Below, piece after piece: positions 822 to 23,570 of a stretch of DNA of 64,000 nt. The stretch is from Pelomyxa schiedti (taxonomy: Eukaryota > Protista > Evosea). Position 1 is the first letter of the stretch. Each line of letters begins with the position of its first letter. Below the pieces are notes generated by a model. That model worked only from the letters and a program-made list of their open reading frames with translations, was not told the origin of the DNA and did not search any database. A program made the position numbers and the translations under genes. Where the stretch lies: positions 1 to 64,000 of the forward strand of contig JAHLWZ010000381.1 in NCBI GenBank assembly GCA_020536535.1. Direction: 5' to 3'.

Positions 822-2459
822 ATGGCGGATGCATCGCCGTCGCGTGGTACCGTCGAGAGTGCGTCCCACAGCAGTTGTACAACCATTATGGGAGAGTCGT
901 CGCCTGATACGCGCACAGCTGTGGAGCCTCAGGGCGACACCAGATTCCGTGAGTGGGCCGAAGAAAACCGCCAACTATTGAATTGTCGTTTCTACGAGAA
1001 CGAGGTTTTGTGTTTTGGTTTTGGTTTTGGTTTTGGTTTTGGTTTTGGTTTTGGTTTTGGTTTTGTTTTTGGGATTCAAAAATATATCTTGAAACAAACT
1101 TTGCTGCAGTGGCCAGAGGTGGAGGAGTGCGTCTTGGCTACTGTTACTAGTGTTACTGATTTGGGTGCATTTGTGGAACTCCCGGTAGTTACCTGTTTTT
1201 TTTTTTTCCCCTGTGTGTTGTCTAACGACGGTTTGGCCAATCTTTGTTAGGAGTACAGTAATAAGGAAGCACTTGTCTTAATTTCTGAATCGGGCCGCAG
1301 GCGTTTTCGGTCGAACCCTTATCATGTTGGGGGTAAATTTGCGGGTTGTGTTCTGCGAGTCGATACAGAAAGAGGTATCATTAACACAGTATTCACTGCA
1401 CTCATTGTGCTTAGGTTACATTGACCTAAGCAGAAGACGAGTCACAGAAGATGATAAAGAACGATTACGGGATAGATATTTCATGTCAAAAATTGTTCTT
1501 GCTCTGTTCTGCGACTTTTCCTGATGATGGTTGTTTAGGTTCGCAAAATATTAGAGAGATTGGTATGTGGTTCATGTGAAATGAATAAATCTCACATTTT
1601 GGAAAGCTGTACTGTATTATCAGACCAACAAAAAGTGTAATTGCATTACTGTGCGGCCAACATCCAAGATGCGGTGCTAGCAGCCCTATCTTTGAGCTTC
1701 CTCTTCTTGTTATGCATCTAATAGCATCTTTTATGGGTCAAAGTAGTCCCTCATGATTCCTCAATAAGATTTTTAAGGTGTCCTTAGGTGGCATTACCCT
1801 TCTCCACATTTACCAACGTCACGTTTGGCCACTGAACACAATTTACAAGAACCCTTTCCTGGCCTTCCAACGAGCCATCATGTAATTTATCATTCAATGA
1901 TGAAGAAACCTAATAATTTTCCAGAGATCCAGCTGCAGCTTTCAAAGGTGTTGAAATCCCTAGTTCAACTCTCAATTCTTTGTCTTTGATACTTGCAGAG
2001 AATAAACGTCTCTTTAGTTCCATGGTATTCGCGTGTCGTTGCTGTTTTTGGCATTACTGTATTCAAGGTTGAGATGGACATTGACGTAACCTGCTTTGGG
2101 CCTACCGGCATTGATGGCCTCAAAGAGATCTTTCTTGCTGGCGAATCCTGCTCAATTCCGGCAGCAACAGTGCGAGTAATTTTACTTCTTATCATCCAAA
2201 ACTGAGTGGCAAAGATTCATATAATTAGCTCCCCTACCTACCGCATGATATCATACTCTCCAGATATTGAGCTGGCAAAAGCAACTCTGCAACGGGCTGT
2301 GGATGTTATGCAGAGTAAGATATACAATTATACACAGTCCAACCTCGAAATTAGGAGTGTATGTCTGTTGTCTACCACAAAAGCAAGATTAACACCATCC
2401 AGAAACCTCGAGTTACCATTATACCTCCAAGACTCTATGACGAGACCATCAATTTTTAG
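822..2459 (+). CDS. Divergent translation initiation factor 2 alpha (eIF2-alpha)-like protein, multi-exon
   Basis: Exons give CRFYENE|WPEVEECVLATVTSVTDLGAFVELP|EYSNKEALVLISESGRRRFRS (S1 domain), GYIDLSRRRVTEDD, IYQRHVWPLNTIYKNPFLAFQRAI and VEMDIDVTCFGPTGIDGLKEIFLAGESCS..KIHIISSPTYRM, collinear with all three eIF2-alpha domains. Confidence 0.85.
1013..1060. repeat. (TTTTGG)8 microsatellite in intron 1 of the eIF2-alpha-like gene
   Basis: Eight perfect hexamer units. Confidence 0.95.
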
Positions 2460-18356: not shown

Positions 18357-20702
18357 ATGAAGGGCAAAAAGGGTAGCAGCGGCCACAGTGGAAAGACGAC
18401 CAAGTCTACGTCGACTACGTCTACGTCCACAACCACGTCATCGTCGTCCACCACATCCAAGAGGAAGAGGCCGAGACACGACGCTCGCGAGGAGGNNNNN
18501 NNNNNNNNNNNNNNNNNNNNNNNNNNNNNNNNNNNNNNNNNNNNNNNNNNNNNNNNNNNNNNNNNNNNNNNNNNNNNNNNNNNNNNNNNNNNNNNAGCAG
18601 CGGCCACAGTGGAAAGACGACCAAGTCTACGTCGACTACGTCTACGTCCACAACCACGTCATCGTCGTCCACCACATCCAAGAGGAAGAGGCCGAGACAC
18701 GACGCTCGCGAGGAGGAGGAAGAGGAGGATGACATCATGGTCGACACAGACTCCCCTCACTTGAAAAGTGCGTTGTCGTTGGGGTTGTTTGTTTTTTTTT
18801 TTTTTTTTTCCCTTTTCCCTTTTTTTCCCCCATTATTCCCCCCTTTTTTTAACCATCTCAACAAGTATGGTTTGGTTCTCGTATTTTTTTTTATTTACCA
18901 CTAGTACGATGTTCTTAAATATTTTTTCTTTTCCCTATTAATGTAGTTTAGGGTTGATTCAGGAAGAATACAAGTTATGGAAGAAAAATGCCCCATTTTT
19001 GTACGATATTGTGATTACCCATGCTCTTGAATGGCCATCCAACACTATATCTTGGTTACCAGACAAAATTGAGTGCGTTGCATTTTTTTTTTTTTTTTTT
19101 CTCCCTTTCTTGAATAACAAAACCCTCAACAACAGTACGAAAGATCGGGCAATTACCGAGAAAAGATTGCTACTTGGAACTCTTACAAATGGAACAGACC
19201 AGAATTATCTCATGCTTGGCAGAGTTAAACTTCCCAACGAAAGTTTACAAACTGAATCTGACCGGGAAGGTAGGTGCTTTACGACCTCTTTTTATGGTGT
19301 AATTTAGGTTTGTTAGATTACAGAATGGTCTCAGACAGAATTGAAATTTTTCAGAAAATTCGCCATGATGGTGATGTGAACAGGTAGTGGGAGTCTGTTA
19401 ATTGACCTAATCCTTGACCAGAGCCCGCTCTATGCCACAAAATCATCATCTGATTGCAACCAAGTCCTCCCTCTCGGAAGTGACTATTTTCGATACATCC
19501 AAACATACCGTAACCACCGAACCACCAGGGAAAGTGAAACCACAAATACGGCTTGGCGGTCACACAAAAGAAGGGTCTGTTACTGTGGCAGAATTTCTTT
19601 CCTTACAGTGTCAAGATACGGGCTTGCATGGAACCCAATAAGAAGTGGGATGTTGATCAGTGGTTCAGAAGATTGCTTGATTTGCATGTGGGATATAAAT
19701 GCACGCTCTGCAACACAACCAGTATCACCGAGTAACATATTTAAAGGACACTCTAGTGCTGTGGAGGTACTCCTGTGGATTTTTGGCTCCTAACAAACCT
19801 TGATAACATAAATGCAGGATGTTGCGTGGCATGTAAAACAAGAACATGTTTTTGGATCAGTAGGAGACGATAAACAACTTTTAATGTTGGTATTTCCCTC
19901 CCTCTCGCTTAGCATTTCCACCTGACATACCTCCTAAAAGGTGGGACATAAGAGAGCCAAGTAGATTCGTTCAATCTGTAGTGGCTCATAAAATGGATGT
20001 TCATAGTATTGCTTTCAATCCATTTTGTGAGCACCTCCTTGCTACCTCTTCCGCTGATAAGGTTTGAACAGGAAACTTGAACTTATTATTAAACATTCTT
20101 CCAGACCGTTGCTCTTTGGGACCTTCGTAATCTCAAATCCAGACTTTACGAGCTAGTTGGGCACAGCGATGAAGTTCTTCCTATCGCCTGGTCACCTCAC
20201 TGCGAGTCTGTGATAGGTTCTGCTGGTAGAGACAGGTTTATTTCTCTTTACTACTTTACAAGGCTTTTACCGGAATCACCAGACGTTTGCATGTGTGGGA
20301 CCTCAGCAGAATCGGAGACAAGCAAACCGCCGAAGAAGCAGCAGACGGACCGCCCGAGCTTTTGGTAAGAGTGCATTTGTCCTCATTTGTTCTGATTGCT
20401 GTTGCTAGTTCATTCATGGAGGTCACACTGGCTCCGTGGTCGATTTTGCCTTCGACACCCGTGATCCGTGGCTTATGTCATCAGTCGCGGAAGGCAACAT
20501 TCTTCAGACGTGGAAGATGGTATCTCATCCAACCCGTCGCCCTTCTAATCATTCATTCCACTTACCGATGCTCCTACAGGCTGAGACTATTTTTTCTGAG
20601 TGTGCCTTTACCACCCTTTCACCTGCCCCCACATCAACCGCCTCAACAACAAGCACTAGCACCACCACATCAACAAGTGCCGCAGCAAAGAAAGGTACCT
20701 GA
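18357..20702 (+). CDS. RBBP4: Histone-binding WD40 protein RBBP4/RBBP7/MSI1 family, with Ser/Thr-rich termini
   Basis: [59 protein letters not shown]|[29 protein letters not shown]|FIHGGHT. Exon 1 is interrupted by a gap with a duplicated flank. Confidence 0.93.
18376..18715. other. Scaffold gap (18496-18595) with an exactly duplicated ~120-bp flank (assembly overlap artefact)
   Basis: 18376-18495 is repeated at 18596-18715 across the 100 N. Confidence 0.9.
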
Positions 20703-20871
20703 AATCAGTATCACCTTGAGGTTCTTTTTCTTTCTTTCGAGTGTTGCACCAACGTGTGATGTGTTTATGAAGGAACAAAGAAAGGTGGGAAAAAAAAAGA
20801 TTGTTATCTTTTTTTTGGGTGGTTTGGTGACTTTTTTATTACTTAAAGCATCACAAAGGAAACAAGGCCTT

Positions 20872-21922
20872 TTACAGGTCGAACTGAACAATCTTCTTGG
20901 CACCGGTGATTCTGCCAGTCCTGCGGGCAGCAATAAGACCACACTTCTGACCAGCTGGGCAGCTTCTCTTGACTGTGCTGGGCTTTCCGATGTGCTTGTG
21001 GTTACCACCTCCGAAAGGATGGTCCACAGGCTAAGCGGGGAGAGGGTTGGTGAGAAACAGGGAAATCAGGGAGGAGAAACTTACGTTCATACAAACACCA
21101 CGGACGCGGGGCCAGTTGTTGCGCTTGACTTTGTGTTTCCAGAAGGCGTTACCGGCTTTCAGAATGGGCTTGTCGACCCTGCCACCTCCGGCGCACATTC
21201 CGATCATAGCTCTGCAGTTATTGAAAATAGTCTTCTTCTGGCCTGTTGAGTTTGTTGGAATGACAGGAAAGGGGAAATTAGAATCAATACCGGATGGCAG
21301 TTTGACTTTAGTCCTGCCCTCATCTGGGTTCTGAGATACGACGGTACAATAGTTACCAGTGCACCTGCCAAAGCAACCGCGGTCTCCATATTTACCCTCA
21401 AGGTTGCAAACAATTGTACCCTCAGGAAGCTCAGAGACGGGGAGAACGTTGCCAACGCTGAGGTTAGCTGAGGGGCAGGAGTTATTTTTTTGGTGTAAGA
21501 GGCCGGATTGTTTACCTTTCTTTCCGCAGTAAATGAATTGCCCGGTGTAAAGTCCCTCAGGGGCAATAAAGACCTCTTTCTTCAGGGAGTACTTGTATTG
21601 GTGCCTGAAAACAATGCGAGCAAGTGGTCCACCTCTGCCTGGATCGTGAATGATTTCCTGACATATGATCAATATCGGTACTGCATGAAACGCAAAAACG
21701 GGGCGCCGATGTTTGCCCCACACACCCACTCCTCCCAAACAACAAAAAAAGCACCTTGACAAGCCCCTTGACATATCCGTGTCTCTCACCAAAGTCAATA
21801 GCACGGAAGCGTGCTGGCCCCTTCCGGTGGTGCTTTCGTGCTGTGAAGATGGACCCAGCCCCCATCCTTTGTGCTGTTTGTAATAAGAATAGCGAAACAG
21901 TGTAGAAACGAACGGCAACAAC

Positions 21923-22636: not shown

Positions 22637-23570
22637 ATGGGGAAGTCTCTTCGAAACTGTGAGTGCTTTCTGTTTCTTACGGTTTCGAAAAACCACGAGA
22701 GTGATACTTTCCTTTTTTTTTTTTACAGGGAGCAAAACGGTGAAGACTCCTCGTCGGCCGTTTGAAAAGGAGAGGCTGGATCACGAGCTTCGCCTTTGTG
22801 GTATAAATCCATACTTTTCATGGCACTGTGTCACCACAAAGAATTGCAGCGAAGAGACTCACGTGAAACTAGGGGAGTATGGGCTAAGATGCAAACGTGA
22901 GGTGTGGCGCGTTCATTATGCTCTGACAAAAATCAGAGGAGCAGCTCGAGAGTTGCTCAAACTTGACGAGATTGATCCAAAGAGAATTTTCGAAGGCAAT
23001 GCTATGCTTCGGTATATCATCACTTTCTTTTATTTGTCTATTTTGTTTTGTTCTATTTCTTACTTTGTTTCAGACGGCTGCACAGAATTGGTGTTCTTGA
23101 CGAGAGCAAAAACAAGGTATCTTTATGAAGAATAAAGGAAACCACCTCACAGTAATTTAAAACAAAGCTGGATCATGTTCTGAGTTTGAAAGAACAAGAT
23201 TTTATGGAGCGACGTCTCCAGACACTTGTTTTGAAGCAAGGTCTGGCAAAGTCGGTGCATCACGCACGTGTGCTCATTCGCCAACGCCACATCCGGTTTG
23301 CAACACCTATTTTCACCAAAAGCTTTACTCTTATCTCGTTTCAGTGTCGGAAAGCAAATAGTAACTTCCCCATCCTTCATGGTTCGAGTATCTTCCCAAG
23401 GTCATATAGACTTTTCTCTCACAAGTGCATACGCTGGTGGCCGCATAGGAAGAGTGAAACGCAAGCGGGCCAAAATCGCAAAAGAACTTGCAGCTGTCCT
23501 TGCAGAAACTGGTGAAGCTGCTGAAGCTGAAGGTGAAGCAACAGCTGAACCAGCCTCAGAAGACCTCTAA
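22637..23570 (+). CDS. RPS9: 40S ribosomal protein S9 (uS4), divergent from RPL8
   Basis: [66 protein letters not shown]|[14 protein letters not shown]; acidic C-terminal tail. Confidence 0.97.

Follow-up and report, generated by a model that had tools for sequence, protein, structure and literature searches.

A Pelomyxa schiedti paralog of eIF2-alpha with glycine at the Ser51 position, and divergent second copies of eIF2-beta, eIF2-gamma and eIF5 in the same genome

Phosphorylation of eIF2-alpha at Ser51 is regarded as a universal brake on eukaryotic translation, and a gene of the amoeba Pelomyxa schiedti raises the question of what an eIF2-alpha without this serine may do in the cell. The gene is located at positions 822-2459 of the forward strand of the DNA stretch analysed here (the window, 64,000 nucleotides, positions 1 to 64,000 of contig JAHLWZ010000381.1, assembly GCA_020536535.1, contig C381 below), and the eIF2-alpha paralog that it encodes is called alpha'. 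A preliminary description made from the DNA letters had placed Gly at the Ser51 position (GGC 1293-1295) and Ser at position 50, and had proposed either a stress-insensitive eIF2-alpha or an endogenous kinase decoy. The evidence presented below favours a stress-insensitive eIF2-alpha over a free kinase decoy, because a C-terminal domain of the gamma-binding type is kept and equally divergent copies of eIF2-beta, eIF2-gamma and eIF5 are found in the genome. According to its sequence, alpha' is a fast-evolving eIF2-alpha paralog without the phospho-switch, and we consider the chances about even that it is the alpha subunit of a second eIF2 blind to the kinases. Second copies of eIF2-beta, eIF2-gamma and eIF5 in P. 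schiedti, all divergent and intact, are new here, and a probable place in a complete second eIF2 set adds interest to alpha'. No report of a cellular eIF2-alpha paralog lacking Ser51, or of a diverged second eIF2 trimer, was found in the literature searched.

The translation of positions 1251-1373 (EYSNKEALVLISESGRRRFRSNPYHVGGKFAGCVLRVDTER, starting with EYSNKEALVLISESGRRRFRS) was compared with the PDB by phmmer and aligned end to end with eIF2-alpha S1 domains; 18 of the 19 PDB matches of this exon (exon 3) were named eIF2-alpha, including the yeast and human S1 domains. Aligned with residues 37-79 of 2A19_A, the yeast eIF2-alpha in the PKR complex, the query has Gly15 at Ser51 and Ser14 at Leu50, with its Ser12/Glu13 on Ser48/Glu49, which bears out the loop as it had been read initially. 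Logan contigs from four runs of the same study, two of DNA and two of single-cell RNA, were placed on positions 700-2600, with zero differing letters in the DNA or RNA contigs and DNA depths of 38.5 and 19.9. The Gly codon is covered, unchanged, by both DNA runs and by one spliced RNA contig (X3 record 17, 1250-1372); the preliminary description had left room for a sequencing error, which is ruled out because the DNA and RNA contigs agree.

A loop-exon profile built from alpha' and the canonical P. schiedti eIF2-alpha described below was searched against 1.84 billion representative proteins and gave 1403 matches. Among the best 150 of these, all canonical and none a relative of alpha', position 51 was Ser in 148 and Thr in one, with one match lacking the RRR anchor left unscored, and positions 49-51 were ELS in 147, EVS in one and ELT in one. 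Ser51 was likewise found at all 26 eIF2-alpha loci of the JGI metagenomes, which are canonical and include no relative of alpha', and the viral contigs scanned with the loop exon contained no relative either. The canonical residue at position 50 is Leu, Phe or Val. Gly at position 51 is a real exception among eIF2-alphas. Thr at position 51 is found in trypanosomatid eIF2-alpha, and a 252-residue library match (P0059), otherwise a canonical eIF2-alpha fragment, has Thr at 51 (ILLSELTRRRIRS). All database searches were made exon by exon, and spliced models were used only in local pairwise alignment, local BLAST and the tree. Word searches with the open reading frame 381-1247 limited to exon 1, and with the open reading frame 2206-2673 limited to exon 2215-2358, found no relatives; both blanks are weakened by a length filter, and the first also by an exon 1 model that is apparently outside the database.

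The features of the gene are the following, with positions in the window.

822-2459, + strand: whole coding region of alpha', 11 exons, 374 amino acids, modelled from homology, GT-AG boundaries and RNA junctions
822-1004, + strand: exon 1, 53-residue N-terminal extension and then the start of the S1 domain (NCRFYENE), by homology to canonical NCRMYENK
1005-1109, + strand: intron 1, 105 nucleotides with a GTTTTG microsatellite, not in the canonical gene, placed by homology only
1110-1184, + strand: exon 2 (WPEVEE...GAFVELP), covering the first half of the S1 domain, Pfam S1 E 0.0018 on the exon alone
1251-1374, + strand: exon 3, covering the second half of that domain, regulatory loop VLISESGRRRFRS included, RNA contig X3 record 17
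1293-1295, + strand: codon at the Ser51 position, GGC (Gly), preceded by TCG 1290-1292 (Ser at the Leu50 position)
1311-1325, + strand: S-N-P-Y-H, with the Ile58-Asn59 equivalents deleted and Leu61/Ile62/Arg63 changed to Pro/Tyr/His, from alignments
1371-1425, + strand: R-G-Y-I-D, interrupted by intron 3 (1375-1414), counterpart of KGYID with Lys to Arg as the only change
1415-1494, + strand: exon 4, RNA junctions 1372/1413 and 1494/1539
1539-1562, + strand: exon 5, 8 codons, RNA contig X3 record 17 with a loose end continuing at 1607
1607-1742, + strand: extra exon (6 of 11), RNA contigs X3 record 18 and X4 record 21, junction 1742/1788
1788-1881, + strand: exon 7, helical domain (...VWPL...), RNA contigs
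1925-2024, + strand: exon 8, conserved linker RRL(T/A)PQ changed to NKRLFSS, RNA and alignment
2068-2175, + strand: exon 9, start of the C-terminal alpha/beta domain (VEMDIDVTCFGPTGIDGL...), PF07541 E 0.00018 on the exon alone
2215-2358, + strand: exon 10, remainder of the C-terminal domain, RNA and alignment
2403-2459, + strand: exon 11, TAG stop, RNA junction 2358/2403

All ten introns are GT-AG and eight of them measure 39-45 nucleotides. Nine of the ten splice junctions are supported by RNA contigs, seven of them in full (1372/1413, 1494/1539, 1742/1788, 1881/1925, 2023/2067, 2175/2215 and 2358/2403) and two by loose ends, at exon 2/exon 3 (13 letters overhanging behind a template-switch primer tail) and at exon 5/1607. 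Within the gene, RNA support is missing only for exon 1 and intron 1, which are placed because NCRFYENE/WPEVEE matches NCRMYENKYPELEE in the canonical protein; the DNA contigs break at the GTTTTG repeat of intron 1, and the start codon is the first ATG 3' of a scaffold gap. The N-terminal extension, announced as about 50 residues in the preliminary description, comprises in this model 53 residues before N-C-R-F-Y, in the exon without RNA support, and it is not distinctive of alpha' because the canonical copy has one that is longer still (about 95 residues). The depth of the RNA was low. The gene is expressed and spliced, and alpha' is not a dead copy since, in addition, its frame has remained open despite about 39% identity to its paralog. 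A ten-exon model with 1563-1777 as a single intron (332 amino acids, canonical loop length) was dropped, as the RNA shows exon 1607-1742 and the acceptor at 1788; a short isoform that skips this exon was not seen in the RNA contigs and may exist as a minor isoform.

Just 5' of the start codon, at positions 700-800, the depth of the DNA contigs was about 1600, against about 38 in the gene (30-40 times higher), and many short DNA contigs terminate at 779-785, which suggests a high-copy repeat at this point. A run of a different study (X5) contained 9% of the sampled words of 700-2600, and may come from a relative or merely reflect the 700-800 repeat. An RPS9 (uS4) exon is present in the window at 384-539 and at 22866-23021 (100% identical), with a third copy at C312:5694-5837 (98%); the copy at 384-539 abuts a run of N (562-661) immediately upstream of alpha', and this joint may be a scaffolding or duplication artefact.

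The genome searched comprises 52,367,397 bases in 5337 contigs, and the published P. schiedti genome is described as 52.4 Mb in 5337 scaffolds, with 7.4 introns per gene (PMC8887013). Both the Pfam family EIF_2_alpha and the loop exon match one other locus in this genome, on contig C851, where a gene of 8 exons encodes a protein of 521 amino acids with the loop LILQSEFSRRRIKS (Ser kept), KGYID, RRLTPQ and an acidic tail. All seven introns of this gene coincide in position and phase with introns of alpha', which has three more. The two proteins share 39% identity over 303 aligned residues, and the best local score of alpha' was obtained with the C851 protein (166 bits, against 138 bits or less with every other eIF2-alpha compared); the C851 protein itself is 46-73% identical to the other eIF2-alphas compared. 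Thus, alpha' deserves the name of paralog that it had been given, because C851 encodes a canonical Ser51-bearing eIF2-alpha, and the possibility that alpha' could be the only eIF2-alpha in the genome, which would have spoken against the preliminary description, is removed.

An alignment of alpha' with nine canonical eukaryotic eIF2-alphas (the C851 protein, five full-length metagenome frames and three library proteins) has revealed that alpha' keeps 39 of the 53 columns that are invariant in the canonical proteins (74%), while, of the 56 columns on which the other eight agree, the C851 copy shares 53. The conserved elements are CRFY, Gly30-Ala31, Glu49, Arg52-54, Arg56, GYID (with Lys79 to Arg), WPL and the C-terminal VTCF..GID core. 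Ser51 has become Gly, Tyr32 Phe, and Leu61/Ile62/Arg63 Pro/Tyr/His, and the equivalents of Ile58-Asn59 after Ser57 (just past RFRS), the RRLxPQ linker and the acidic tail have been lost, with 18 residues remaining beyond the C-terminal domain. The protein retains the three-domain build of S1, helical and C-terminal domains: Pfam S1 gave 19.1 bits on the 25-residue fragment of exon 2 (E 0.0018), and PF07541 gave 30.7 bits against a cut-off of 22.8 in a six-frame search (2062-2265) and 21.9 bits on exon 2068-2175 alone. In a tree of 24 eIF2-alpha sequences the end branch of alpha' was 3.45 changes per site, compared with 0.69 for the C851 copy (about five-fold).

In eIF2-eIF2B structures, Arg53 and Arg63 (R54/R64 in the paper) turn toward the phosphoserine, and Ile62 (I63 in the paper) is a site of regulatory mutations (PMC6513899). 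Arg53 is kept in alpha', but Arg63 and the loop residues 58-63 are not; with several loop elements changed, the switch is therefore dismantled at several points. The KGYID element, a common contact of kinases, eIF2B-alpha and uS11 (PMC6513899), is present as RGYID, and the surface that would be needed by both a working factor and a decoy is kept in alpha'.

The extra exon 1607-1742 is absent from canonical eIF2-alphas, and its approximately 46 residues occupy the place of a short inter-helix loop in the helical domain. The DNA of this exon is unique in the genome, which ruled out a repeated DNA element, and its peptide matches about 70 other places (e.g. C167:6294-6401, C1014:18454-18558 and C821:97237-97350). 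The alignment of 26 of these copies defines a module of about 35 residues (...ALLCGxHPRCGAxSPxxxLPxx...) with invariant His, Arg and Gly, which in five of the six members with longer flanks is located close to the beginning of open frames with 500-750 residues that contain no Pfam domain. The exon gave no match to the F-box families (PF00646/PF12937) at E values up to 10, a profile of 27 members found no match in the PDB, and one member matched the F-box at E 0.15, below the cut-off. An earlier characterization of the exon as F-box-like is thus not supported by Pfam or PDB, and the resemblance is limited to the LPxxLxxxI stretch, which recalls the first F-box helix. By sequence comparison, the inserted exon is a copy of an uncharacterised module that has expanded in this amoeba.

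The following divergent second copies were located in the genome.

C146, about 20000-21800, + strand: gamma', divergent second eIF2-gamma
C505:28525-29450, - strand: beta', listed at NCBI as the 260-residue 'translation initiation factor 2 subunit 2 [Pelomyxa schiedti]' (P0169)
C526 end (160500-160842) and C609:1-1230, + strand, also C5111 and C3853: eIF5', divided across contig ends

The C-terminal family of eIF2-gamma (PF09173) matches two loci, C843 with 97.8 bits and C146 with 42.8 bits. The gene for gamma' has a counterpart to every canonical gamma exon, and the pieces that align are about 44% identical; GHVAHGKT, DCPGH and NKVD (motifs G1, G3 and G4) and the zinc ribbon are intact, an insert of about 10 residues precedes the G5 motif, and the best PDB matches are human and yeast eIF2-gamma. 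The eIF2-beta/eIF5 family (PF01873) was found in the canonical eIF2-beta (C213), eIF5 (C892), the divergent eIF2-beta (C505), the divergent eIF5 (C526/C609 and C5111) and C1187. The beta' protein is 40% identical to the canonical eIF2-beta and has one K-box instead of the usual three, a gamma-binding helix (DYNYDKLLQRL), an intact C2-C2 finger and 14 extra residues inserted in its central domain; a word search with its open reading frame in 5.8 billion proteins gave the P. schiedti protein itself as sole match. The FYRY arginine finger and the W2 domain are kept in eIF5'. A third, weaker and more divergent gene of eIF5-N type, with a lysine-rich tail and no W2 domain detected, is present at C1187:11100-12200 (+). 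The second copies are 40-44% identical to the canonical ones, about as divergent as alpha', and the beta', gamma' and eIF5' genes are all intact.

The other families checked do not follow this pattern. The eIF2B-alpha/beta/delta family has four loci, the usual number counting a related isomerase, and neither this family nor eIF1 has divergent extras; SUI1 has three or four loci, eIF1A two equally conserved copies, and the RPS9 exon copies are 98-100% identical. Among the factors checked, divergent duplication is, as judged from these comparisons, restricted to the eIF2 trimer and its GTPase activator, which argues against a contaminating second eukaryote. The initiator tRNA found is of one type, encoded by two identical genes on C533 (A1:U72, GGG/CCC anticodon stem); a second kind was not found in the genome with a narrow search pattern, and there is thus no sign of a separate tRNA client. 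The two genes belong to a tandem-duplicated tRNA cluster (C533:13300-14700) with the order Met-initiator, Glu-CTC, Gly-CCC, Met-initiator, Glu-CTC. CDC123 is an assembly factor of eIF2, and matches to the D123 family numbered 34 in the genome, at about 20 or more loci, one of them a classical CDC123 with 141 bits and the rest weaker; the strongest locus of the family is C104:42530-43309, and others are e.g. C455, C796, C733, C941 and C870. Multi-copy, fast-evolving genes of CDC123 type have already been reported from amoeboid organisms (PMC4431377).

These data suggest a mechanism in which alpha' would join gamma' and beta' through its C-terminal domain to form a second eIF2-like heterotrimer. 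This would carry the ordinary initiator tRNA, with eIF5' serving as GTPase activator. Lacking both the phospho-acceptor and the phosphate-holding Arg63, alpha' could not be converted into an inhibitor of eIF2B, and initiation through its trimer would thus continue under stress, while the eIF2-alpha kinases silence the canonical factor. We propose only tentatively, as the less probable side of the matter, the wider view that the cell has two parallel eIF2 systems, a kinase-controlled trimer and a complete diverged set that delivers initiator tRNA despite the integrated stress response; with two such systems, the alpha' module, which derives from an amoeba-specific family, may tie the second one to a further regulator. 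Several observations weigh against a second, kinase-blind eIF2. Invariant residues including the RRLxPQ linker have been changed in alpha', so that its classical function may be impaired, and alpha' might bind the canonical gamma instead, or no partner at all. The searches of the genome yielded a single type of initiator tRNA and a single eIF2B regulatory set, which gives no hint of a separate client or exchange factor. The RNA evidence covers alpha' alone, with beta', gamma' and eIF5' known from their genes only. Searches of limited reach brought up no alpha' or beta' ortholog from other organisms, leaving long-term conservation unproven, and the 24-sequence tree did not place alpha', so that the duplication cannot be dated from its very long branch.

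Other explanations account for part of the same evidence. As an endogenous pseudosubstrate, alpha' would use its S1 domain to dock kinases and/or the eIF2B pocket without being phosphorylated itself, and would damp the stress response in the manner of poxvirus K3L and ranavirus vIF2-alpha, a role that is compatible with membership of a second eIF2 and that we regard as unlikely, though worth keeping in mind. The docking residues (Gly30, Ala31, Tyr32 to Phe, Lys79 to Arg, Gly80, Tyr81, Ile82 and Asp83) are kept while the acceptor is lost, KGYID is an interface shared by kinases and eIF2B-alpha (PMC6513899), and Entamoeba, a relative, has two eIF2-alpha kinases (PMC5179133). However, the same patch contacts uS11 in the initiation complex, and its conservation is therefore expected of a working factor too; the full C-terminal domain is needless for a free decoy, S1 is not free-standing in alpha', and the presence of matching beta', gamma' and eIF5' copies speaks for a complex. 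In addition, no P. schiedti eIF2-alpha kinase was identified here, and in a GCN2 search (PF12745, RWD, HisRS-like) no genome locus combined RWD with a HisRS-like domain, a result that does not show the kinases to be absent. A more speculative form of the decoy, in which the HPRCG/LP module recruits a ubiquitin ligase to whatever alpha' binds, could invoke the F-box-like LPxxLxxxI end of the module and the sub-threshold F-box value of one member (E 0.15), but the module has no Pfam or PDB match. It is also improbable that the switch has been shifted by one residue, with Ser50 (TCG 1290-1292) phosphorylated and alpha' regulated almost normally. This serine adjoins the lost site, at a position where canonical proteins have Leu, Phe or Val, and the docking patch that positions the loop is kept; nevertheless, the elements that read the phosphate have been changed (Arg63 to His, Ile62 to Tyr, a two-residue loop deletion), and a phospho-Ser50 would therefore lack the canonical tightening of eIF2B binding.

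A comparably low probability is given to the view that alpha', like the other second copies, is a transcribed remnant of a duplication that has no function of its own and drifts to loss under relaxed constraint. The long branch (3.45 against 0.69 changes per site), the 14 of 53 invariant residues that have been changed, the low RNA depth and the failure of the searches to find orthologs would all fit this explanation, but a neutral copy this divergent would not keep 374 open codons, ten GT-AG introns and 74% of the invariant residues, and four genes are in a parallel state, all of them intact. Drift is considered unlikely because of the open frame, the correct splicing and this parallel state. 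Finally, the divergent genes could come from a co-assembled second eukaryote, parasite or prey, since the assembly was obtained from micromanipulated cells carrying other organisms (PMC8887013). Such an origin is very improbable. With a second genome, other conserved genes should be present in divergent copies too, whereas the RPS9 copies are 98-100% identical, the two eIF1A copies are equally conserved, and SUI1 and eIF2B occur in normal counts. The introns of alpha' agree in size and signals with those of the canonical gene, relatives of the inserted module are encoded at about 70 sites of this genome, beta' is entered at NCBI as a protein of P. schiedti, and a foreign organism would be expected to keep Ser51 in its sole eIF2-alpha.

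To our knowledge, the only departures from the Ser51 brake so far are laboratory mutations that remove it and viral mimics that evade it. If alpha' works in a second, kinase-blind eIF2, it would constitute a natural, genetically encoded bypass of eIF2-alpha phosphorylation, and a natural experiment on the purpose of the brake, on the co-evolution of eIF2 subunits for a separate complex and on regulated and unregulated initiation channels, a question raised here for anaerobic amoebae with permanent endosymbionts and frequent stress. Should alpha' prove to be a decoy, we would know of no earlier cellular counterpart of K3L.

Compared with canonical eIF2-alpha (EIF2S1/SUI2, and the C851 protein), alpha' is alike in domains, introns, the CRFYE start, the RRRxR loop, GYID and WPL, and it differs in Gly51, Ser50, the two-residue deletion, the 46-residue insert and the missing acidic tail. 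The poxvirus K3L and ranavirus vIF2-alpha proteins are viral pseudosubstrates of PKR that keep GYID and have no phosphorylatable Ser51, and such decoys consist of S1 alone or of S1 plus the helical domain, and are not known to contain the gamma-binding domain. From what is generally known of these viral proteins, alpha' resembles them in its eIF2-alpha-type S1 domain with GYID and no Ser51, and differs in being cellular and intron-bearing, with a full C-terminal domain and a genome that contains beta, gamma and eIF5 copies. Archaeal aIF2-alpha, the subunit of an initiator-tRNA carrier without the Ser51/eIF2B switch, shares with alpha' the lack of this switch and of the acidic tail; however, alpha' is of eukaryotic type by its best matches and shared spliceosomal introns, and its nearest sequence is the C851 protein. 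The engineered S51A forms of yeast and mammals, and the S59A eIF2-alpha expressed beside the endogenous protein in Entamoeba histolytica (PMC5179133), cannot be switched by kinases, as would be the case of alpha', but these are single-residue laboratory mutants of the canonical protein, whereas alpha' is natural, long diverged and has more changes. The multiple eIF4E/eIF4G paralog complexes of trypanosomatids (PMC3559699) are a precedent for parallel diverged sets of initiation factors in one protist, in that case for the cap-binding complex and not for eIF2.

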